Source: Felis catus
Lineage: Eukaryota
Length of the DNA stretch: 64,000 bases
Assembly: GCF_018350175.1 (NCBI RefSeq)
Contig: NC_058386.1
Location: 125,488,001-125,552,000 of the forward strand
Reading direction: 5' to 3'
The notes under the pieces were generated by a model. The model ran no database searches and was not told the origin of the DNA. It worked only from the letters and a program-made list of their open reading frames with translations. Within the stretch, counting starts at the first letter, position 1. The number at the start of each line of letters is the position of its first letter. The position numbers and the translations under genes were made by a program. Below are positions 1-35,670 of this stretch, piece after piece.

Positions 1-2678
1 TCATTCACATCTCCGCCCAGATGTCACTGTCTCTAAGTCCCCATCTGATCCCCTGTCCCTCCAATCACCGCGGCCAGTCTCTTTCCTTCTGATGGGGGTC
101 CCTGTGCTCCCCCACTACACGGCCAGCCCGGGGAGCACAGGGGAGGTGGCTGTGTGGCTCCCGCATGGGGCCCGGCCCACAGCAGGGGCTCAGGAATGTT
201 CCCCGAGCAAAGAATCCATTTTCCAATCCTCCCTTGATGGGAGGAGAGCTCTCAGCTGTGCAGTTCTGAGGAGGCCTGAGGGATGAGGGGTGTTGCTTTG
301 GCACCCTCCCGGCCACTGATCGGAGCCCCAACTGATGAAGGTATGTGTGCGCCTGGGTGTGCCGAGTGTGTGGACAGTGGGCCACGTGGAAGGGAAGGGC
401 AGGAGGAGAAGAACCAGGAGTCCGTTCCTTGCCCTTAGAATCCCAGGGTTGTGCAGCTAGAAGCAACCTCAGATTCTAGAACTTTGTAAGGAGCCCACAC
501 CCACCACATTAAGATGGAAAGACCGAGGCCTTGAGCACAGAGACTTGCTCCCGACATCACATGGCCAGTCTGTCCAGGGCAGAGCTGTGAGCCCAAAACT
601 CTTTCCAGCAACCCCCAGGCTGTATCCCTGGTTCCTGGAAAATCCCGACACCCCTCCCACCCTGCGCTCCAGACACTAGGCTCAGGGTTAGTGTTGGCCG
701 GGGGCCCTGCCTGTCCCAGCCCAAGTCCACGAGTGAGCTCTGTGTGTAGGAGGGGTGGGCGTGGGAGGGCACCTCAGGTTCTGCTGAGCACCCCCCACCC
801 CTGCAAGCTGGCTCTGCTCTCTGGGAGTTTTCTCAAGGTCCCCATGATGTCCAGGTGCCCCAAGACTGACCAGAGTAGGTGGCCAGGTGGCCACTGGGTC
901 CCCAGCGCAGGAAGGACAGCAGGACAGAACTCCACGGGAGCTGGGGAACTGAGAGGGCCCAGGCCTCGCCCCTTCCTGCCTAGGTGGGTAGAAGCGGGGT
1001 CCCTCCCTCCTCCAGACTGCTGTGCCAGAGAAACCTGGGAGCAGGCTTCCTCCCACCCCCAGCCCAGCTAATGGGAACCAGATGGCAGGATGTTTAGTCA
1101 GCGCCTGGGGAGCGGCACGAACAGGGGAAATGGGTTGGGGGCCAGGATTCCAGAATCTATCCCCAGGCAGGGGGAGGGTCAAAGCAAGGGCTCCTGCCAC
1201 AGTCCCAGTCCGACTCCAGGGGCCCACTTTGGGAAGGGTCCTACCCCTCCTCAGGCAATGCCTGGACCGGGAGACAGGAGGCCCGGCCTCCAGCATCTGA
1301 CCTACCCCCCTCTTGGTTCCTTCTCTGTACTGGGGAGGCTGGGAGCGCTCAGACTTCCAGGATCCCCGCCACACCTTCAGCCTCCATTGCCTGAGTGCTC
1401 CTGCCCCCCAGAGCCTTAGCAGACCACCAGCTCGGGACATCCTGTGTCCCCCAGGGCCACACAGGCACACTGATGGCTTCACCTCTGGCTCCCAACGTAG
1501 TTGCTCATGCTCAGTCCACAGACAGTCTCTGTCTCTAGTCTGTGTGTGGCACAGTCCCAGATTCAGGCCATAAACCAGAGCCCTGGATGGGAGAAGGGAG
1601 AGGGTGCCAGCGGCCCCCGTGTGCTTCATATGGGACTGTGAGCTGGCACGGGGGCTCCTTGAGGGCAAAGGTGCAAGCATGTGAATGCTGAGGAGCCCGG
1701 TGAAGACCCTCTTGCTGGAGACTTCCGCCCTGACCCACCCCCACCCCCTCCTGCATCTCACACCACCCCCGCCCCGTGGCCCTGGACAGAGACCTTGAAC
1801 CCCAGATGGTGGTGGGAAGCTCCTTCCAGATGGCCCTTCTTGGCCCTGCTCCCCCCTCCCTGCACCCTCCCCCAGTTTCCCCCTCTCCCCTCCACCCGAG
1901 CCTTGCCCACAATTAACTCATTTTTTCAGATTGCTTCCAAACATAAGTCAACGCTGGACAGAGCTGTAGGAAAAGCTTCCTCAAAGCTGGCCCCAAAAAG
2001 CCATGTGGTGAGACGGGGCCTCTTTGCCAGCCCCCACCCGCCCGCCCTCGGCTCTCGTAGCGGGGCCTGGGGCTGGGGCCCTCTGAGGGTTGGCCCGGAG
2101 GCCTGTGGTCAGATACCCCCTTCTTCGGCCCACGCTCCGCCCCACGGCCCCTTCCCTCGGGCCCGGCTTCCTTTCCCCCTGGTCCACAGGTGTCCCTCTG
2201 ACCAAGAGGGGAGGCGTGGGGCCTAGAGGCATCTTCGGAGTGCCCGATGACGGTGGTCACACTGGGACCCGGCAGCCCCTGGTTCACATGCAGTTTACGG
2301 TGGGGGTGGTGGCACAGCTACGGAGGCTGCAGGATGGGTAACTGTCCCCTCCACCGACTTTTTCCAGAGGAGAAAATGGAGGTCTGGAGGGAAGGGAGCT
2401 GCCTAGAGGTAGTTAGGGAGCTGGAAGGGGGACCAGCCTGAGGCAGGCCTTGTGCCCAGGTGGCACCGGGGCCCCAAGGGCTGGGGTCCATGCTCGCCAC
2501 CCTAGCTCTGCCCAAGTGTGGTTTCCTCCGGAATTGGGAGGCCTCAGCACTGGCGCCCATGGCAGAAGCCCACAGGCTTGGCAGGTTCCGGGCGGCCCTG
2601 GCACCTGCCCCCTATCCCGGGGACCCAGGAGGCCCTGAGGCCTGCTGCTTGCAAGGCCCGGCCCCTCTCCTTTCCCAG

Positions 2679-2875
2679 CCATGGACGGAGGACCTGGCAG
2701 CCTGGGGTGGGCGGCTTGCCCTGTGGTGGGCCTCACAGGCCCACTGTGTGTGCAGACAGAAACCCCATTCATGGGGGCCACTGGGCCTGGTCCAGTGGAG
2801 AATAAACGCGGGCCTTACAGCAAGAGACCAAGAACACTCAAGTCCAAGAAAAACTCAATCTCTCTTTCTCTTCAG
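2679..2875 (+). pseudogene. Candidate ECMX first coding exon with degraded signal peptide (MDGGPGSLGWAACPVVGLTGPLCVQTE...)
   Basis: Polypyrimidine acceptor ctctcctttcccag ends at 2678. ATG at 2681 is in gccATGG context, followed by a moderately hydrophobic stretch. Donor cag|gtggga follows 2875. Confidence 0.4.
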
Positions 2876-3059
2876 GTGGGAAGAGAGGACGTTGGGGGAA
2901 GTTGGGGGCAAGGGTGGGGGGTATTTGTTTGGGGGGGGGGCCTTCCTGGGGGAGGGCTGGGTCAGGGAGGCTCGGAGCACTGCCGCCAGGGCCAGGAGCC
3001 TAGGGAGCGGGACTGCTCGTGTCCCATCCTGCTGTGGCTACCGCTTTCACCTCTCCCAG

Positions 3060-3254
3060 CTATTCACGCCCTCTCTGGGCCCAGGTGGCCTGCGCGGCCC
3101 AAGCGAAGTGGCCATGAAGAGTATGATGTTCCAGTCCCGGCTTTTTGGGTGGGGTGCTGCCCTGGAGGGGTCCCGGCCAGGCAGGCACCGCCGACTCCCA
3201 TGGGCATGCCGACCCTACAGCCGCCGCCGCCCAGCCAGCCGGGGCCCCCCAACG
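3060..3254 (+). pseudogene. Candidate ECMX N-terminal exon (195 nt, open; ...RPKRSGHEEYDVPVPAFWVGCCPGG...)
   Basis: Acceptor ttcacctctcccag ends at 3059 and a consensus donor g|gtgagt starts at 3255. Length is a multiple of 3. The reading frame is ambiguous because two frames are open. Confidence 0.45.
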
Positions 3255-3925
3255 GTGAGTAGGTGGCACCAGCAGGAAAACTCTGGCAAGCGGGGAGCAG
3301 TCTGTCTTGTTATTAGAATTCCCCCCCCCAACCCTGAGGCTGGCGCAGGAGAGAAAGCCGGTCACCCCAAGGCTGCCCGCCTGGTACTCACCTTGGGGGT
3401 TTCAGCAGGAGCTAGGAGGGACCCAGGGGCCTCAGGAAGCCCTCTCTGGAGGGCAAGGAGGAGTTACAGACTCTGGGAGGCCTGGTGCCTGTAGCCCAGG
3501 GTGAGGGCAGGGGGAGGAGAGACACCCCCTAGGAGGGGCCCCAGCAGATGGGGCTGGAATAATGGATCCAGCTTTGTTGGTTGGGGAGCCAGCTGCCCCG
3601 AGACCTACTGAGGAGACCGGGAGAAGTGTGGGAGGCTGAGAGTGGCAGACCCGGGGCTTGGGTGGGATGCCATAATGGGCCCCAGTAGACCAGCTATGGT
3701 GTGACCTTCGTCCCATATGCCAGTGGTTGGCACCATACTTGGTTGCCCCACCCCAAGGCCTGAGGGCGGGATGAGAGAAGCAGTGGGTGGGCCCAGGCCC
3801 CCACCCCCCGCAGATAGCAGGATCTGCAAGGGAGGCCCATGGTCAATGTCACCATGTGTTAGAGAGGAAGGAGGCAAGCAGGGTGACCCGCTGGCCACTG
3901 GCCTGCTTGTGACATTGAGCAGCAC

Positions 3926-3929
<4 letters not shown>

Positions 3930-3965
<36 letters not shown>
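3930..3965. repeat. (CT)17 microsatellite
   Basis: Direct observation of a perfect dinucleotide run. Confidence 0.97.
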
Positions 3966-3970
<5 letters not shown>

Positions 3971-4250
3971 CTCTCTCGTGCTTGGGGTCCCCCACTCTGG
4001 GGCTATGAAAAGGCGTGCGGGAGACCAAGGAGTCTCTGATACTTGGTAGCCTGGGAGCGGCGGGGGTGGGGGGTCTATGACAGAAGGCTGCAAAGTCCTG
4101 AGGGCAGGAGAGAGAGGCAGAAGTGAGGCCTAGGCAGAGAGAGGAGGGAGGTGGGCCAGCCTGTGACTGGTCTCCCCACTTAGGAAGGAGGTATGGCCTC
4201 AGCCACACAGGGGTCCCAACCAACTGAGCCCACACTGGCTCCTTCTGCAG

Positions 4251-4648
4251 ATCAGGTGCGACCCACCTTCGGGAACCGCAGCCTGGACCAGCCACAGGTG
4301 CAACCCACTTCCAAGGAAGGAGCCCACAAAGCCCCCGCCCAGCACCCAGCACCCAGCTCGAAGGCCCCCACAGGCCAAAGCTGGCTCAGAGGGAGGAGTC
4401 ACCCCGAGCAGCCTGGGAGCAGGAGTGGTGTCACAACGAGGGGCCTAGCAGCAAGCGGGCCCAGCCACAGACCATAGCCAAAATGGGGGCTGAAGCAAGG
4501 CCCCAGGCCACCAAGCTCGGGCCCTTTCAGGCCAGCAGGGCCTCCCGAGCCCAAGAAGGGACAGTGGCCACCAAGGAGGGCCAGGGCAGGAAGGCAGGAG
4601 GCCAGGCACCCAGGCGATAGGGCCCAAAGCCCAGAAGGCCCCCCAAAG
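4251..4648 (+). pseudogene. Candidate ECMX P/Q/K/R/A-rich linker exon with stops and a net frameshift
   Basis: Acceptor ccttctgcag ends at 4250; donor aaag|gtgaga at 4649. Length 398 nt is not a multiple of 3. TAG at 4475-4477 in the entry frame and TAG at 4618-4620 in the exit frame. Confidence 0.5.
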
Positions 4649-4905
4649 GTGAGAACCGGCCAGGACAGGTAGCCCCCAGATGAAGCCTGCAGGGGGTGAT
4701 GGGGCTGTGCCTGAATCTCAAGTGGCTGAGGCTTGGTCACACGTCTCCCAATCATACCAGCGTCACCAGCCCCTCGGGCCCCCACCCTGCTGTCAGTGTG
4801 CCCAAGCTGAGTGGCCCCGCGTACAGGGCCCCGGGCGAGCTCCTGTCCCTCAGCAGGCCCCTGTTGCTACATGACCAGGCTGGGGCTGTGTCTGTTGTCC
4901 TCTAG

Positions 4906-5184
4906 GGGCCTTCCACCAACCTGGCTCAGGGGGCCGGCACCGAAAGAAGGATCATGGCCAAGGCCAAGGTGGCCGCAGCACCAAGAAGACCACAGGCCAC
5001 GGGCAAAAAAGGCCTAGAGGCAGGCACAGGCACGGGTTCACGGACCTGGGCACCTCACAGCAGGCCACGCCATCCCTGCCAGCCTCCTGCCTCCTGACCC
5101 AGGAGGCCATCACCCGCAGCAATGTCAAGATGAAACACGTCCCTGCCCTGACTGACCCTGGCCTAGCCATGCTCCACCTGGCAG
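4906..5184 (+). pseudogene. ECMX exon: basic linker plus LRR N-cap (...SLPASCLLTQEAITRSNVKMKHVPALTDPGLAMLHLA)
   Basis: Acceptor tcctctag ends at 4905; donor gcag|gtcggt. Open for 279 nt. Aligns to ECM2 [36 protein letters not shown]. The second cap Cys is now Arg (cgc, 5115-5117). Confidence 0.85.
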
Positions 5185-5453
5185 GTCGGTGACCCCTTTC
5201 CTCCACACTCACCCTTATGGCAGGAGTAAGAAGGCCACGCACTTGGGGTTCTCCTCTAGTGGGTCCTCGGCCACTGTGGCTGCAGCATCGCTGTGCCTGG
5301 AAATGGCCCACCTACCTGTGCGTCCTGGTTAGCAGTGAGAAGATGCCCTGATGCCCAAGAGCCGGCTCCTCCGGTCCATGTTGGGGAGGTACCGAGTGGC
5401 AGAGGGGAGGGGGACAAGGGAGCGCAGAGTCCAGCTGCCCTGTGTCTGCACAG

Positions 5454-5569
5454 AGCATGAAATGGCCAAGATCCCATCCCGCACGTTCCCCGGGCTGCCA
5501 AATCTGCGGCGGCTGGACCTGAGTCAGAACAAGCTGGATGCCCGAGGCCTGCACCCCTGTGCCTTCAAG
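5454..5569 (+). pseudogene. ECMX LRR exon (EHEMAKIPSRTFPGLPNLRRLDLSQNKLDARGLHPCAFK)
   Basis: Canonical LxxLxLxxNxL repeat; matches ECM2 [39 protein letters not shown]. Boundaries are cag| and |gtgtgc. Confidence 0.92.
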
Positions 5570-5981
5570 GTGTGCAGCACCCTTCTGCTTGTGCTCCCGG
5601 GAGGAGGGCCGGCAGGTCTGAGATGGCTCCAGGCGGCCACCGTGCCTCTCCCCACCCTGCCTGGGGTGATCAGGCCCGGAGGAGGTGCTGTGCAGACCAC
5701 CCAGCATGGTGGGCTTCAGTGATTTGGGACAACACGGTCCACAGCTGGGTGTGGAGAGCAGCGTGGATCCTTGGACCCCCACAAGGGATCCTTGCGTCCC
5801 CACAAGAAGTTCTGGGAGAAACCGAGCAGCGATTCTCAAAACCCGCAGACAGACCTGCTCCAAGCCGCAGTGCAACCAGATAGGTGTCCCTCGGGCAGAA
5901 TCAGCCCAAAGCCATGCCCAGAAGGCCTAGCCTGCCTAGTGGCACCGCGGTCCCCAGCCCCCTCTTCCCCCTGCCCCCCAG

Positions 5982-6049
5982 AATCTGACACGGCTGAAGC
6001 TGGATGGGAACTCGCTGTGCACAGTGCCAGCCCTGCAGCAGCTTTCAGA
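5982..6049 (+). pseudogene. ECMX LRR exon with internal deletions (NLTRLKLDGNSLCTVPAL...)
   Basis: Strong acceptor ending at 5981. About 68 nt, roughly half the equivalent ECM2 exon (~136 nt). Donor position is ambiguous (GT at 6050, 6052 or 6058). Confidence 0.75.
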
Positions 6050-6310
6050 GTGTGGGGGTGGGCCCTGGGGGCAGGAGTTGACAAAGCCAGGCCTGGGAAG
6101 GGGGGCGGGGGGCGGTGGGGGGCTGTTGGTGAGGCAGAGGAGAAGTGCGGGCGAGGGGAGGGCCACCCGGGGCAGCCTGGCTGGAGGGCAGAGAAGGGAG
6201 GACTGGCTGGGACAGTGGCCCTGGCCTCTAGGAGCTACACAGGGAGTTCCCAGGGGGCCCCCAGACCCCTGCAGTCAGGTCACGTGCCTGTCCGCCCACC
6301 TGCCCTGCAG

Positions 6311-6464
6311 GGCTCAGCCGGCTGCTGACGCTGGAGGTGGAAGGGAAACAGCTGCAGTATGGCAACATCTCATCCCTGGCCTTTCAGCCCCTACACAGCC
6401 TGCTCTACCCGGGGTTGGACCGAAACTGCGGACCATCCTACCTGGCCTGCCAGCCTCCCTGCAG
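6311..6464 (+). pseudogene. ECMX LRR exon with 4-nt deletion frameshift (GLSRLLTLEVEGKQLQYGNISSLAFQPLHSLLYPGLDRN / LRTILPGLPASLQ)
   Basis: Boundaries ctgcag| and |gtgagc. Matches ECM2 [53 protein letters not shown]. Frame switches at ~6426; 154 nt versus 158 expected. Confidence 0.9.
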
Positions 6465-6834
6465 GTGAGCCAGTGGGTACAGCTGCCCATGAGGATAGTT
6501 TTAAAGATAAACCCACAGAGCCTCGGTGCCAGAGGGCCTCTTCTCTGACTGACCTAACCTTCCTGAGGCCCACAGTTGGGCCTTGAGGACCGTCTTCGAC
6601 CTTCTGGGTGTCCCTGAACAAGGCTCAGGCCCGCCCTGGGCCCCCCGGCCCCCCTGTGCTGGATGGTGCTCTTTGAGGCCGTGAGGAGCCCTGGCACAGC
6701 TGGAAGGTGTTGCTGGGATCCTCTGCAAGATGGCCATGGCCCCAAGAGGGACAGACATGGCAACACCTGCAAGGGGATAGGGAGCCAGGCCAGGCAGGTG
6801 GGCCCCTCACCCTCACCCTCAGCCCTGGCCCTAG

Positions 6835-6953
6835 GAGCTGTACCTGGGCACCAGTGTCATCAAGGAGGTGACAGAGGGCATGCTGAACCACAGCCTCGGC
6901 GTACTGGTGCTCCGGGAGTACCTCCTGGCACCCCGTGCTTGGATTGACCTTCC
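6835..6953 (+). pseudogene. ECMX LRR exon with in-frame deletions and dead donor (ELYLGTSVIKEVTEGMLNHSLGVLVLREYLLAPRAWIDLP)
   Basis: Matches ECM2 [47 protein letters not shown]. The expected phase-2 donor gtgagt reads gagagt at 6954-6959. Confidence 0.85.
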
Positions 6954-7402
6954 GAGAGTGCTGCCGCCCGACCTGGCACTGTGTGAGCTTTACCCCAATG
7001 GGCACGCGGATGCCCGAGAGGGGGGATTCACTCAGAAGGACCCAGAGAGTCACAAGGAGGGGTGGCTCCATTGCTTTCGGGCCTGGTCTCAGGTGGGTCA
7101 GCTGGGTCATCTGCCTCCCTGCTCAGGGCTCAAGGTGACCTGGGCCCTGAGCCACCCACCTGCTACTCCAAGAGTTTCCTCTGTCCCTCCCACCCAGCAA
7201 GATCCCCAAAGCCACAGAAACCCCTTCCTCTGCTGGGAATTGCCCTGTAGGCCCCCAGCCAGCTCCCCTGGGAGGTGGTGTGGGCAGGGACAGAGGGGCA
7301 GCAGGGGCAGCGGGAACTGGCCAGGTGCTGAGTGAGATCAGCTAGGAGGTGACAGGGCAGGAAGGTGCATGGAAGAGGTGGTGGGCACGGGAAAGAACAG
7401 CA

Positions 7403-7846
7403 TGTGGGTGTCCTGGGGCATACCAGACAAATGCCACATACAGGGTAGCTTAAGATAAACAGATTTCTACTCCCACAGCTCTGGAGGCCGGAAGTCTAAA
7501 ATCGAGGTGTTGACAGGGTCACACTCCCTCCACAGGCTCTAGGGCACAATCCTTCCTCGCCTCTTCCAGCTTGGTGGCCCCGCGTGTTCCTTGGCTTATG
7601 ACCACACCACTCTAGTGTTGGCCTCCGTTGTCACATGGCCTTTTCCTCTGTGTGTCTCTGTGTCTGTCCTCTTTTGTCTCTTATAAGGACACTTGTCTGT
7701 CATTGAATTTAGGGCCCTCCCTAATCCAGGATGAGCTCGTCTTGAGATCCTTCACTTACATAGGCAAAGACCCTTTTGCCAAATAAGGTCATGTTGACAG
7801 GTTCGGGGCAGACGTATATTTGGGGGCTACTATTCACCCCACTACG
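7403..7846 (-). mobile_element. MLT1B-like MaLR solo LTR in an ECMX intron
   Basis: Diagnostic blocks cacagctctggaggccggaagtc, tcttataaggacact...tcattgaatttagggccc, gcaaagacccttttgccaaataaggtca and terminal ttcaccccactac. Confidence 0.85.
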
Positions 7847-9048
7847 GGAAGGGTCCAGAATGAGTCCTTATGATCTGGTTTGGACAACTGGGTGGAGGTG
7901 CCAGCAGAAGGGATCCCGGAGGAGACTCGGCTCTTACAGGCACTGCCTAAGGAGTAAGGACGTGGTCCTGGGAGCAAGCAGCAGGAGGGCTGGGAAGTAC
8001 AATCCGTGGGGTCTGGTGACCGCCATGGCAGGGCAGGGGGTGGTAGGCAGGGGTCAACAGACACTCCAACCGTACATTCCAGGGACCAGAGCCTCCCGCC
8101 CTGTACCCTCATGTTCCAGGAAAATGTTACCAGGACGTTTGGGTTTAATTATTCTTTTTTCCTCCCCCCCCCCTTGCCAAGGGGGCAAAGGAAAGCAGAC
8201 AGCAGCCTAGGGAGGGGCCTCCCAGCCACTGTTCCACTCCCACCACGGGGCCTGGGCAGGGGGCCGGCGGCCGGTCAAGGCCTGCTGGTGCCGCCCCGCT
8301 TTCCTCTGGCTGGTGGAAGAGGAGGGGGCCCCTCCGCTGGCAAGGCGGAAGCCCTGGAGCCCCAGCCCCCGTGGGCTGAGGGGCGGCATGGGCCCCAAGG
8401 CCAAAGGGCTGGCCCACCCACAGGAGCTGGGGATGTCACAGCCCGCGTGGAGTGACCTGGGCTGACGTCCACCCAAGCTGCACCATCTGCTTCCCTGATC
8501 CCTCAGGGTCCCCAGCCGCGGCCCCTGGGAGCCTTAGTTTTCTCTCCGTCCCCATCCGTCTTCTGCTGATCAGACTGAGTGAGACAGGAAGAGGACAAGA
8601 GAGTGTGTAAGGACGAGAGGAAAGGGCTCTGGAGCTGAGCGGGGCAGAGTGGAGACAGACTGAAGTGGGCCAGCACCTGTATCTGCACTGCTTTGTCCCC
8701 TGGACGTTTTAGGAGCCCCCGAGGCGGGGGAAGGAGTGGGAGAACGCTGGCCTCACTAGCCCTGTGGTGAACTGGGAAGGGCCCCACCCAGATCCCCTTT
8801 TCCCAGCCTCTTCAGACAGAGGAGGACGCAGAAGCCAGACAGGGCCTGGCCTGACTCACGGTCAGGCTGCAGCTGGCCTCCCGGCCCTTCCCAACGGTTG
8901 AGAGCTCTGGTGGCCTCTGCCACCTGGGAGCCAATGCCCACTCTCTTCTTGGGTGTGGACCAGGCACCTTGATTTGCAGCTTCGGCTGTGGCTGCGGTTT
9001 CTCCTGGGCACCACCGGCTCACCCCACACCTGAACACCCATCCTGCAG

Positions 9049-9373
9049 GAAGCTGGAGACCCTCGACCTGTCCCACGACCCGCTGGTGCACGTGCCTTCC
9101 TTCCGCCACGGGGCCTTCGGCGCCTGCCACCACACCACAACCACACAAGCGCATCCCCGGCTACGCGTTTGCGCACACGAAGCCAGGCCTGGAGCTCCTG
9201 TCCCTGTCCCACGAAAGCCTGTGCACCGACGGCGTCCATGGCGTGTGCTTCCTCGGCCTTCGCGCCTCCCTGACCAGGCCGCTGCTGGATCGCAACCAGC
9301 TGCGGGCCGTCCCCCGGGGCCTCGGGGGCCTCAGGGGGCTGCGGGGGCTGCGTCGGAGCCACAAGAAGATCAG
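9049..9373 (+). pseudogene. ECMX large LRR exon with two 1-nt deletions (KLETLDLSHDPLVHVPSF / PRGLRRL / KRIPGYAFAHTKPGLELLSLSH...RSHKKIR)
   Basis: Boundaries ctgcag| and ag|gtgggg. Collinear with ECM2 [23 protein letters not shown]...[22 protein letters not shown]...NNNKIR. Frameshifts at ~9104 and ~9145. Confidence 0.92.
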
Positions 9374-9812
9374 GTGGGGCTGTATGCCTGGCCCAACACG
9401 CTGTCCCACTACGCCCCACTGCCAGCCAGGGGAGAGAAGGGCAGCTGAGGCCGGGGGCGGGGAGGGGGGGCCCTGCCTGGAAGGTGGGCCCACGGGAGGA
9501 GCCCATCACTGCTCCTATCCATATCCACCTTGGTTGTCACGACAGGAGGCCGTGCCCAGTGGTTGGCAGGCCCGGGCAGCCACGGTGGAGGGCTGCAAGC
9601 GGCAGAAATCTGGGCAGGGGTGGCCAAGGGGGAGGTGAGAGGGCCCTGGCCCAGAGACAAGAGGGCTGAGCCTCCAGTGGGGAGGTGGCAAGTGGTGGCC
9701 GTGACCTGCGTGACCAGCTTCCCTGGGTCTGTTTCTCTCCTCTTGTATGACACCTGCCTCTGCTTTCTGGGGTCTTCACTCCTCCACTTGACCCTGCCAC
9801 CCCACTCTATAG

Positions 9813-10209
9813 ACAAGTGCCCCTGAATTCCATCTGTGTGACACTCCAGTGGCTCAGGACTCCAACCTCATCCCCACGCACCTGGAAAACAGCCTTATTG
9901 ACCGGCGCCGCATCCTGCCCACCGCCTTCTCCTGCATCTGAACCTGCCTCGGCAGTGTGGTCCTCCGGCCCCAGCAGGGGGCAGGGGCTGGGGAGGGATC
10001 CTGGGATTCCTGCCCCCCTCTGCTCCTTAGGACTGGTTGGGGAGGGGGGGGGCCAGGTCTACCTCCACTTGATCTTTGCACTACTAACAGAAAGATCTAG
10101 AAGACCCAGCTGTTTCAGATGCTCCCACTTCCCATTGACTGCTGAGGCCCCTTCACTTAGTAAATGGCCCAGCAGGGTACCGCGCTGGTCTGCACTGGAA
10201 CATAATAAA
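9813..10209 (+). pseudogene. ECMX terminal exon (QVPLNSIC / DTPVAQDSNLIPTHLENSLIDRRRILPTAFSCI*...VVLRPQ) plus 3'UTR and AATAAA
   Basis: Matches the ECM2 C-terminus NILPEEIC...[38 protein letters not shown]. There is a +2 (GT) slippage at 9835-9840, TGA at 9939-9941 (probably CGA>TGA), and AATAAA at 10204-10209. Confidence 0.9.
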
Positions 10210-29280: not shown

Positions 29281-29607
<327 letters not shown>

Positions 29608-29610
29608 TAG

Positions 29611-30205
<595 letters not shown>

Positions 30206-30691
30206 TGAGGAAGTAGGGAAGGCAAGCGGGGACTCCCCCGGGGCTGGCAAGGAAGGCGGGTCATGGGCGGAGAGAGGGTGTGAGGGATGAGAGGGAGCCG
30301 GCCTGCTAGACATTGCAGCTGAACGTCTCCTAGGTGGGCGGGACACCAGAAAGGCACGGCAGAGCCGGGGAGGTCAGGGAACAGTATGCGCACTGGAGGT
30401 GCACGGATTTGTGGTGAGACGGACGGGTCCAGCTCGGGACAGGAAGTAGGCTGATGAGGGGGTGCAGGGTCTTGCCTGGGGTTCTCAGGATCCCCCCCCC
30501 ACCACCACCACCACTCCGGTCCTGGCTTGGCTTCCAGTCTCTTCCTCGGCCCCAATCACACTAGCCAGGAGACCTGCCATTTCTACAGGCTGTCCGGTCA
30601 GAGCCAAGTCGGGACAAGCTCTGCATCCGGGGAGGGCGGGGGAGGGCGGAGCAGCCCGGAAGCTGCCGGGGCGAGGCCCAGGCCCGGCTCA

Positions 30692-30738
30692 GCGCGCCCT
30701 CTAGCGGCCGGTGTCCTCTCTGCCTCTAGAGGGCGCTG
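30692..30738. promoter_or_regulatory. Pair of divergent CTCF-like motifs in BGN intron 7
   Basis: Minus strand CGGCCGCTAGAGGGCGCGC (30692-30710) and plus strand CTGCCTCTAGAGGGCGCTG (30720-30738). Confidence 0.6.
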
Positions 30739-31398
30739 CTCCAGCCTGAGCACTCCCCCCCCCCCCCCCCCCCGCCCATCGTGAGGTTCCTTACCCTCTC
30801 TCTCTCCTGCTTCCTCTGTCCCTCCCCTAGAGAGGGGCTTCGGGGAAGTTGAGAGCTGCTAAAGAGCAAGTACCCCTGCGCACTGGACGGAAGAGGGGGC
30901 CACGTGCAGGCTCCTTCTCCTGTCATATCTATGGGTCTCTGGAGTGAGAGGCTGCTGCCCCGGGGGCAGGCCCGGAGCCCGGGGAGCCCAGAGGGAGGGC
31001 CAGGGACCCTCTGTGAGCCCAAGGTGCCACCTTTCCTGCATCGATACCCACGTCCCATCCCTTGACCCCCGCGTGCCCCTCCCTTCCCACCCACCACACA
31101 CCACACCGGGGCCCTTCGTCTTGGCCCCTGGTCACATACCAGTGCCTTAATCCCATCCAACAGCCTCGTGACCACCATACCCAAACCTCGCTTTGCTCCT
31201 CCCCACAATGGAAGAATCATATCCTGGACCTCAAAGGGCAGGCGCTGTGATTAAATCACACCCATGAGGTGGCCAGGTGGGACCCAGCCCGGAGGGAGGG
31301 CCCAAGCCCTCTGTCGTCTGCCCTCTACTTGGCCCACCCAGGCCAGTACAGGTTCGGAGGGCAGTCAGGGGTGACTGGGCCACCGGCACTGGGCCTGA

Positions 31399-31617
<219 letters not shown>

Positions 31618-32634
31618 NNNNNNNNNNNNNNNNNNNGGTGGCCTGGGCGGGGTCTCTGGGGAGCGCAGCAGACATCCCGAAGGGGAGGGCAGAGCGAGCG
31701 AGGGAAGCCAGTGCCCAGCTGCACCCAACCCAGCCCCCGCCCTTGATCCTGGACCCCAACGCGCTGCCTCCCGACGCCCTCATCCCGACTCCCAGGCATG
31801 CAGATGGGGCACAAGACCCAGCCGCCGTCACGTGTGCCTTGGCTTCAGAGCTGCCCCTGCCCCCCACTTCATAGCCACTCAGAGCACCCTCATAAAGCTT
31901 TCTTCCCATTCACCCTAAGATCAAGTCACCCAAGGCTCCGGTCCAAGGAAGACGGTCCCTGGGTCTAGGGGGTGGGAAGGGGCTAAGAGGGAGGAAACAG
32001 CCCACCCCACCTGCCTGGCACGCATTCCTTCTTCTCATGTACTTCCAGCTTCCAACCCTCCTTAGCCTGGCCTGCTACCCCTGGCCTTCCATGCTCCCCC
32101 CACCCTTCTGCAAGTTCACGGCCCATCTACCCCAGCCTCCTTGCTCTACTGGCCTCTAGACCAGTGTCTTCCTGTCTGTTTCTCTGTCTCTCTCTGTCCC
32201 TCTCTCTGTCTCCATCCGTCTCTCTCATCCTCCCTCTCCTCGCTCACATCACTGAGCTGGGTCTGGTGTCTGTCTCGCTGGGCTTCTGCCCAGCCCCAAC
32301 CTAGGCAAGCCAGGGGGCAGAGGGCAGCTGCCCCCAAGCCTGCCCTGCCCAGACTCTGCCCCCCCCCACCCCGAGTCTGGACAGTCCTGGAGGAGGCCAG
32401 CATGTGGAGGTGATGCACCCTGCGCGCAGTCCACAGTCCGAAGGGGAGCACTGGCCCAAGAAAAGGCCCAGCATCCCGCTGGAGTCGGCAGCCAATTTTC
32501 CTTGGCCTTTCCCGCCCCGCACGATGGCTAGTTCCCCCCTCCCTTCACCTTCTGGCCCCTGGTATGGTGGGGGTTTCGAGCAATCACACCCAGCTTGAGG
32601 AGGAGCTGCTTCTGAGGTCGGTTGTTGTCTTTCA

Positions 32635-35228: not shown

Positions 35229-35670
35229 GTATGAATTTCCCAGGGATGCTGTAACCAAGGACCACGAGCAGGTGGCTTCAAATGGANNNNNNNNNNNNNN
35301 NNNNNNNNNNNNNNNNNNNNNNNNNNNNNNNNNNNNNNNNNNNNNNNNNNNNNNNNNNNNNNNNNNNNNNNNNNNNNNNNNNNNNNNNNNNNNNNNNNNN
35401 NNNNNNNNNNNNNNNNNNNNNNNNNNNNNNNNNNNNNNNNNNNNNNNNNNNNNNNNNNNNNNNNNNNNNNNNNNNNNNNNCGTGTGTCAAATGTCCTTCT
35501 GCCTCCCTCTTATGAGGACACTTGCCACTGCACTTAGGGCCCTCCCAGATACTCCAGAATCATCTCTCCATGCCAAGATCCTTAAGCACATGCGCAAAGT
35601 CCCCGTTTCCAAATCAGGTCCCACTCTGGTTCCGGGGCTGCAGGTGAACACTGACCCGGGAGGTCCCAGC
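35229..35670 (-). mobile_element. MLT1B/C-like MaLR LTR, interrupted by the gap
   Basis: gtatgaatttcccagggatgctgtaac...ggtggctt before the gap; ctcttatgaggacacttg...ttagggccctccc...ccaagatccttaa...gcaaagtccccgtttccaaatcaggtc after it. Confidence 0.8.
35287..35480. other. Assembly gap (194 N) inside an MLT1 LTR
   Basis: Run of n. Confidence 1.

Follow-up and report, generated by a model that had tools for sequence, protein, structure and literature searches.

In a 64-kb window of the Felis catus genome (NC_058386.1, 125,488,001-125,552,000, forward strand), the remnant of a matrix protein gene was found upstream of the biglycan gene BGN. We are highly confident that this remnant is the ortholog of ECMX, which survives in the cat as an intron-bearing and presumably unitary pseudogene. 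ECMX is the X-linked paralog of ECM2 and belongs to the 'class A/I' genes for small leucine-rich repeat proteins (SLRPs); it is located head-to-tail upstream of BGN. The cat remnant extends from position 3114 to position 10001 on the plus strand and consists of nine coding exons, which are arranged in order and on one strand. All coordinates given here are positions in the 64-kb window, and all features described lie on its plus strand. If the blocks are read in the correct frames, they yield a signal peptide, a basic N-terminal region, the cysteine cap LRRNT, 14 of the 15 leucine-rich repeats (LRRs), and the C-terminal cap LRRCE.

Identification of the ECMX ortholog

Full-length proteins annotated as 'extracellular matrix protein 2-like' were gathered by means of two word-indexed protein searches. 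The placental sequences of the resulting ECMX set originate from four canids, zebra, hippopotamus, camel, banteng, deer, beaked whale, two bats, elephant, armadillo, rabbit, chinchilla, and kangaroo rat. The non-placental sequences originate from four marsupials, both monotremes, lizards, frogs, coelacanth, and gar. The ECM2 protein of the pika, which was taken from a search of representative proteins, served as the mammalian ECM2 comparator. The exon-like blocks of the cat were found by means of tblastn with the intact ECMX proteins of dog, fox, zebra, banteng, elephant, monito del monte, and echidna. They agree repeat by repeat with repeats I-XV of horse ECMX (Table 3 of Park et al. 2008, PMC2637281). 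For the determination of sequence identities, the exon pieces of the cat from the cap to the premature TGA were aligned as separate rows and the counts were summed; no joined model was used.

The cat pieces are identical to the ECMX proteins of dog, zebra, and banteng at 249-252 of 336 residues (74-75%), whereas the identity to pika ECM2 in the same columns amounts to 144 residues (43%). Given that the pieces jointly reach this identity to placental ECMX over 336 residues, the match is not due to chance. A maximum-likelihood tree that was calculated from the exon-8 piece alone places the cat within boreoeutherian ECMX, beside the groups of carnivores and artiodactyls and far from ECM2. Furthermore, the remnant ends about 19 kb before BGN, which lies downstream on the same strand with its coding exons at 29383-31488; one of these exons matches bovine biglycan (2FT3) with an E value of 3.9e-31. 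Tree and synteny, together with the difference in sequence identity, therefore identify the locus as the ortholog of ECMX. What remains of the cap, of LRR I-IV and VI-XV, and of the LRRCE cysteines aligns with intact ECMX, and LRR V is largely deleted. An ECM2-type paralog upstream of BGN had already been proposed in a first-pass annotation of this DNA, and the comparison with ECM2 corroborates this assignment. Likewise, ECMX proved to be the closest match, and not another LRR family, which that annotation had named as a finding that would speak against it.

The designation as a unitary pseudogene is based on the position at the ancestral locus, the retention of introns and of all eight splice acceptors, and the existence of full-length orthologs in other species; the earlier description as an intron-bearing pseudogene at the ancestral locus thus stands. 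Full-length ECMX was found in 17 placentals as well as in marsupials, monotremes, reptiles, frogs, and fish. With regard to an intact second copy in the cat genome, the protein searches gave no full-length felid ECMX, which is weak negative evidence.

Gene layout and inactivating lesions

The lesions are distributed over the whole length of the gene. Exon 1 (3114-3254) contains the conserved ATG and the signal peptide, whose start corresponds to the N-terminus of the aligned placental ECMX proteins other than a few gene models with N-terminal extensions. A 1-nt deletion directly after codon 5 (approximately at 3129) disrupts the signal peptide, and an in-frame deletion of 24 nt follows in the same exon; the donor GTGAGT is intact. 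Due to the conserved start and signal peptide at 3114, the previously suggested gene start at 2679/2681 had to be given up. In tblastn, the block containing the ATG at 2681 (2506-2711) matches only the N-terminal extensions of the gene models from raccoon dog and elephant seal. Judged from these matches, it is probably a 5' untranslated or promoter-proximal region and not conserved coding sequence.

Exon 2 (4251-4648), which encodes the basic, low-complexity N-terminal region, has lost 1 nt at approximately 4370-4371 and contains a TAG in the ancestral frame at 4618-4620; its AG acceptor and GT donor are intact. In exon 3 (4906-5184), which comprises a basic segment, the LRRNT cysteine cap, and LRR I-II, the codon TGC of an invariant cap cysteine is changed to CGC (5115-5117), which leads to an Arg. 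The frame of exon 4 (5454-5569; LRR II-III) is open, and the exon still matches Pfam LRR_8 with an E value of 9.9e-06; in LRR II, a His stands in place of the consensus Asn. Exon 5 (LRR IV) is preserved as a remnant only (5982-6047). It contains in-frame deletions of 9 nt and approximately 12 nt, and its 3' part beyond approximately 6047, which corresponds to most of LRR V (about 46 nt), is missing together with the donor. A search of the flanking introns for the lost half detected no remnant above background, as its highest local score (32) equalled the control maximum.

Exon 6 (6311-6464) encodes the end of LRR V and LRR VI-VII. Its length is 154 nt instead of the expected 158 nt due to a 4-nt deletion at 6426, and its GT donor is intact. 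Exon 7 (6835-6953; LRR VIII-IX) contains in-frame deletions of 6 nt and 15 nt, and its donor is dead, with GA at 6954-6955 where GT is expected. Exon 8 (9049-9373; LRR X-XIV) is shifted in frame by two 1-nt deletions at 9104-9105 and 9145-9146, and four of its consensus Asn residues are replaced. In exon 9 (9813-10001), which encodes LRR XIV-XV, the LRRCE cysteines, and the C-terminal tail, a slip of a GT dinucleotide at 9838-9839 has added two nucleotides. A premature TGA at 9939-9941 ends this frame 20 codons short of where the dog protein terminates. A polyadenylation signal AATAAA is located at 10204-10209, about 200 nt beyond the ancestral coding end and as previously annotated.

All eight lesions that had been listed before (the change of the cap cysteine, the loss in exon 5, the 4-nt deletion, the dead donor, the two deletions in exon 8, the GT slip, and the TGA) were found in their places. 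The two deletions in exon 1, the deletion and the TAG in exon 2, and the in-frame deletions in exons 5 and 7 add to this list. The number of seven exons that had been assigned is valid for the LRR part, but not for the gene, which has nine coding exons. The total number of lesions is at least 17, including about a dozen indel events. At least ten lesions break the reading frame: five deletions of 1 or 4 nt, one insertion of two nucleotides, two stops, one dead donor, and one exon without 3' part and donor. Of the splice sites, all eight AG acceptors and six of the eight GT donors survive. With six frame-shifting indels, two stops, the GA donor, and the loss of the exon 5 end, an open frame with usable splice sites across all ECMX coding exons no longer exists in the cat.

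Relaxed constraint and age of the loss

In order to assess constraint, residues that are invariant in intact ECMX proteins were inspected in those columns that are covered by the cat pieces. Across 28 intact proteins ranging from gar to placentals, 129 columns are invariant, and the cat is changed at 24 of them. Among the placentals alone, the cat is changed at 36 of 188 invariant columns (19.1%); the corresponding leave-one-out values of the 17 intact placentals are 0-6.5%. The dog has retained all 17 invariant Asn residues, most of which are the consensus Asn of a repeat, and all four invariant Cys residues, compared to nine and three in the cat. In Tajima relative-rate comparisons with four different outgroups, 55-58 replacements were specific for the cat and 20-22 for the dog (chi-square 15-16). 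In the exon-8 tree, the terminal branch of the cat has a length of 0.67, the median being 0.038. The opinion that sequence and splice sites are well preserved can therefore not be maintained: most splice sites survive, yet 19% of the placental-invariant residues are replaced and at least 17 lesions have accumulated.

Replacements and lesions of this extent indicate an old loss. Judged from the aligned sequences, the excess of substitutions and the indels are as expected of a gene that has been drifting over much of the period since cats and dogs diverged. A date calculated by hand from the excess of replacements depends so strongly on the neutral rate assumed that it is no finer than 'tens of millions of years'. 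A lower limit results from a record of 51 amino acids from the Iriomote cat Prionailurus iriomotensis, which contains the cat-specific replacements N>E and S>C at invariant positions of LRR XII in exon 8. The decay is therefore older than the split of Felis and Prionailurus. It is plausible to assume that selection on the ECMX protein ceased on the cat lineage tens of millions of years ago, that is, after the canids had split off and before Felis and Prionailurus separated, and that the lesions would then have built up neutrally.

Transcription of the locus and alternative explanations

A HMMER search with the clean stretch of 75 residues from exon 8 (9150-9374) against 1.84 billion representative proteins retrieved a 173-residue 'Uncharacterized protein' of Felis catus from UniRef, which is 100% identical to the query and, over window positions 8976-9392, to the genomic sequence. 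The 90% cluster of this record additionally contains a 238-residue cat entry and the 51-residue Iriomote cat protein, which is named 'uncharacterized protein LOC109496649'. None of these database records of the cat locus is recognised as ECMX. Both cat TrEMBL models use a cryptic acceptor with its AG at 8978-8979, so that the exon begins at 8980; this acceptor precedes the ancestral one of exon 8 by 69 nt. In one model, the exon 6 donor (6464) is joined to this acceptor, and exon 7 with its dead donor is consequently skipped. In the other model, 19 residues from a far-upstream exon (283-341) are joined directly to position 8980. Both models translate part of exon 8 out of frame and then continue into the intron. 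The segment 283-341 implies an alternative first exon, which precedes the ECMX start codon by 2.8 kb.

If the cat models rest on RNA, we infer that the locus continues to be transcribed and mis-spliced. It would thus probably still give rise to aberrantly spliced, non-functional RNAs that have been annotated as 'uncharacterized protein'. Many pseudogenes, both young and old, are transcribed and mis-spliced. The RNA-labelled sequencing runs that contain the stretch cover the introns as well and are uninformative with respect to splicing.

The same models could be taken as an indication that the locus was maintained because it functions as an RNA gene or gives rise to a short new protein of 173 or 238 residues. 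There are two of them, supplemented by a named LOC; they share the cryptic acceptor, one of them has its own first exon, and the acceptors, most donors, and the AATAAA signal are retained. We nevertheless consider this explanation improbable. The open reading frames of the models are mostly intronic or off the ancestral frame; only 75 residues follow the ancestral frame, and core residues are replaced among them. The intron and exon words that occur alike in the RNA-labelled runs are as expected from host DNA or pre-mRNA, and the retention of splice sites over such a time is not unusual for a pseudogene.

Far less probable still, and in our view practically negligible, is an intact cat ECMX whose breaks are errors of this assembly. 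The G+C content of the region is 61-65% and homopolymer runs are present, which is a context where single-base indels are easily miscalled. A k-mer index search with window positions 4250-10209 yielded 14 runs of the same organism (13 samples from six studies), each of which contains all of the 610 sampled 31-mers (fraction 1.00). The lesions within 4250-10209 are thus unchanged in many data sets and do not stem from the assembly; indels caused by assembly errors were a possibility that the first-pass annotation had raised against itself. Moreover, stops, a donor change, deletions of several codons, and a lost exon end go beyond indels in homopolymers, the replacement of 19% of the invariant residues cannot be produced by an assembly error, and the Prionailurus record contains the same replacements.

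Pfam and PDB searches with single exons named no family and gave only generic LRR matches, as would be compatible with a decayed copy of ECM2 or of another SLRP such as a duplicate of biglycan or decorin; this origin is nonetheless virtually excluded by the identity of 74-75% to ECMX versus 43% to ECM2, by the placement of exon 8 in the tree, by the location upstream of BGN, which is the defining synteny of ECMX, and by the N-terminal exons, which match the basic region of mammalian ECMX and show neither the acidic RGD region of ECM2 nor a VWC-like cysteine pattern.

Some points weigh against the interpretation of the locus as an old, still transcribed unitary pseudogene. The independent support for the lesions consists of the presence of 31-mers only, and the term 'unitary' has been judged from one window of the cat genome. 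Transcription was deduced from database gene models and not from reads. The lesions were read in cat DNA, whereas the other species were compared as proteins. Finally, canid ECMX is itself evolving fairly fast: at 220 columns that are invariant in the other placentals, the four canids have 13 fixed changes in common, which makes the dog an imperfect reference for the rate under constraint.

Distribution of intact and decayed copies

The ECMX proteins of dog, raccoon dog, red fox, and arctic fox are full-length and contain all 17 invariant repeat Asn residues and all four cap Cys residues. The loss in the cat is therefore not carnivore-wide, and the earlier proposal of a loss at the level of the carnivores does not hold. 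Besides canids, intact ECMX is found in perissodactyls, artiodactyls, bats, elephant, armadillo, rabbit, and rodents. Perissodactyls, artiodactyls, and bats are more closely related to cats, and rabbit and rodents more closely to primates. Based on this distribution of intact copies, the losses in cat and human (ECMXP) must be separate events, and independence from the human loss, as claimed before, is confirmed.

Apart from the canids and the records from cat and Iriomote cat, the collection contains one further carnivore protein, which is an 'ECM2-like' model of the elephant seal Mirounga angustirostris. This model comprises 361 residues and aligns to window positions 2559-9398; it lacks LRR VI-VIII and continues past exon 8 into the following intron. 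It is changed at 23 of 147 placental-invariant columns (15.6%), and just three changed columns are shared with the cat. Elephant-seal ECMX is probably a second, independent case of decay within Carnivora. The protein searches found no ECMX from bears, mustelids, hyenas, mongooses, or big cats, which is compatible with a wider loss but is negative evidence only. ECMX might be a matrix gene that is repeatedly dispensable. In this case, felids, at least one pinniped, and primates, and perhaps also most non-canid carnivores and muroid rodents, would have lost it independently, with strong constraint elsewhere. We put this generalization forward tentatively, as the chances are somewhat against it in this broad form. 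If it is true, the natural knockouts could be used to work out the function of the ECMX protein.

Significance of the loss

ECMX appears in every classification of SLRPs, yet there is essentially no literature on its function, and it is often missing from expression databases. ECMX itself and the human pseudogene were already known, and the cat case is an ordinary lineage-specific gene loss that changes no general principle. The literature that was searched does not mention a loss of ECMX in the cat or in felids, and the loss in the cat seems not to have been described previously. It adds to the human pseudogene and to the decayed model of the elephant seal, as opposed to the intact and constrained copies of dog, horse, cattle, and rabbit. 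This contrast shows that some mammals can do without ECMX whereas others maintain it, and it offers comparative biologists lineages that can be contrasted. With respect to annotation, the 'uncharacterized protein' records of the cat at this locus can be recognised as presumed translations of pseudogene transcripts.

Additional features of the window and of related database entries

A (TC)24 microsatellite is located in intron 1 of the ECMX pseudogene (3930-3977). Runs of N occur at 31489-31636 and 35287-35480; the first of these abuts the last coding match of BGN, which ends at 31488. Two database models that are annotated as 'biglycan' or 'biglycan-like', from a turtle (Chrysemys) and from the African elephant (Loxodonta), are strong ECMX matches. 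The C-terminal part of the turtle model maps to the BGN exons of the window, and the model looks like a read-through fusion of ECMX and BGN. The elephant model has no match to the BGN exons of the window.

Comparison with known systems

ECMX was named as an ECM2-like gene upstream of BGN by Park et al. 2008 (PMC2637281), whose list of predicted orthologs comprises human, macaque, cattle, horse, dog, opossum, platypus, frog, and fish. The intact mammalian genes, for example those of dog, horse, and cattle, resemble the cat locus in their position upstream of BGN, in their nine exons, in the order of the 15 repeats, and in having a signal peptide and a basic N-terminal region. Unlike the cat copy, with its frameshifts, stops, dead donor, truncated exon, and replaced core residues, they encode full-length proteins of about 600-630 residues.

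The sister gene ECM2, which is located beside ASPN on chromosome 9, shares its repeat architecture and the LRRCE cap with ECMX. It has retained a VWC domain as well as an acidic segment with RGD, both of which are missing from mammalian ECMX, and it reaches the above-mentioned 43% identity to the cat pieces. The ECMX proteins of placentals, marsupials, and monotremes contain no Pfam VWC domain and, with the exception of one marsupial, no RGD; their N-terminal part is basic. The VWC domain is retained in frog ECMX and in mammalian ECM2, the latter of which contains the acidic RGD segment. These observations conflict with the statement of a review (PMC4859157) that ascribes RGD and a VWF-like domain to both ECM2 and ECMX.

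Human ECMXP is the same gene as the cat remnant and, like it, is regarded as a pseudogene; expressed sequence tags and an RNA-seq table of chordoma indicate that it is transcribed in cartilage-type tissue. Its loss was a separate event, as judged by the phylogenetic distribution. A further parallel is nephrocan (NPC), an SLRP whose gene has stayed intact in certain mammals but is a pseudogene in others, including human. The loss of nephrocan has been attributed to redundancy within the SLRP family (PMC6293640). Nephrocan belongs to another SLRP class and differs from ECMX in locus and in affected lineage, whereas the pattern of intact and decayed copies among mammals is similar in both cases.

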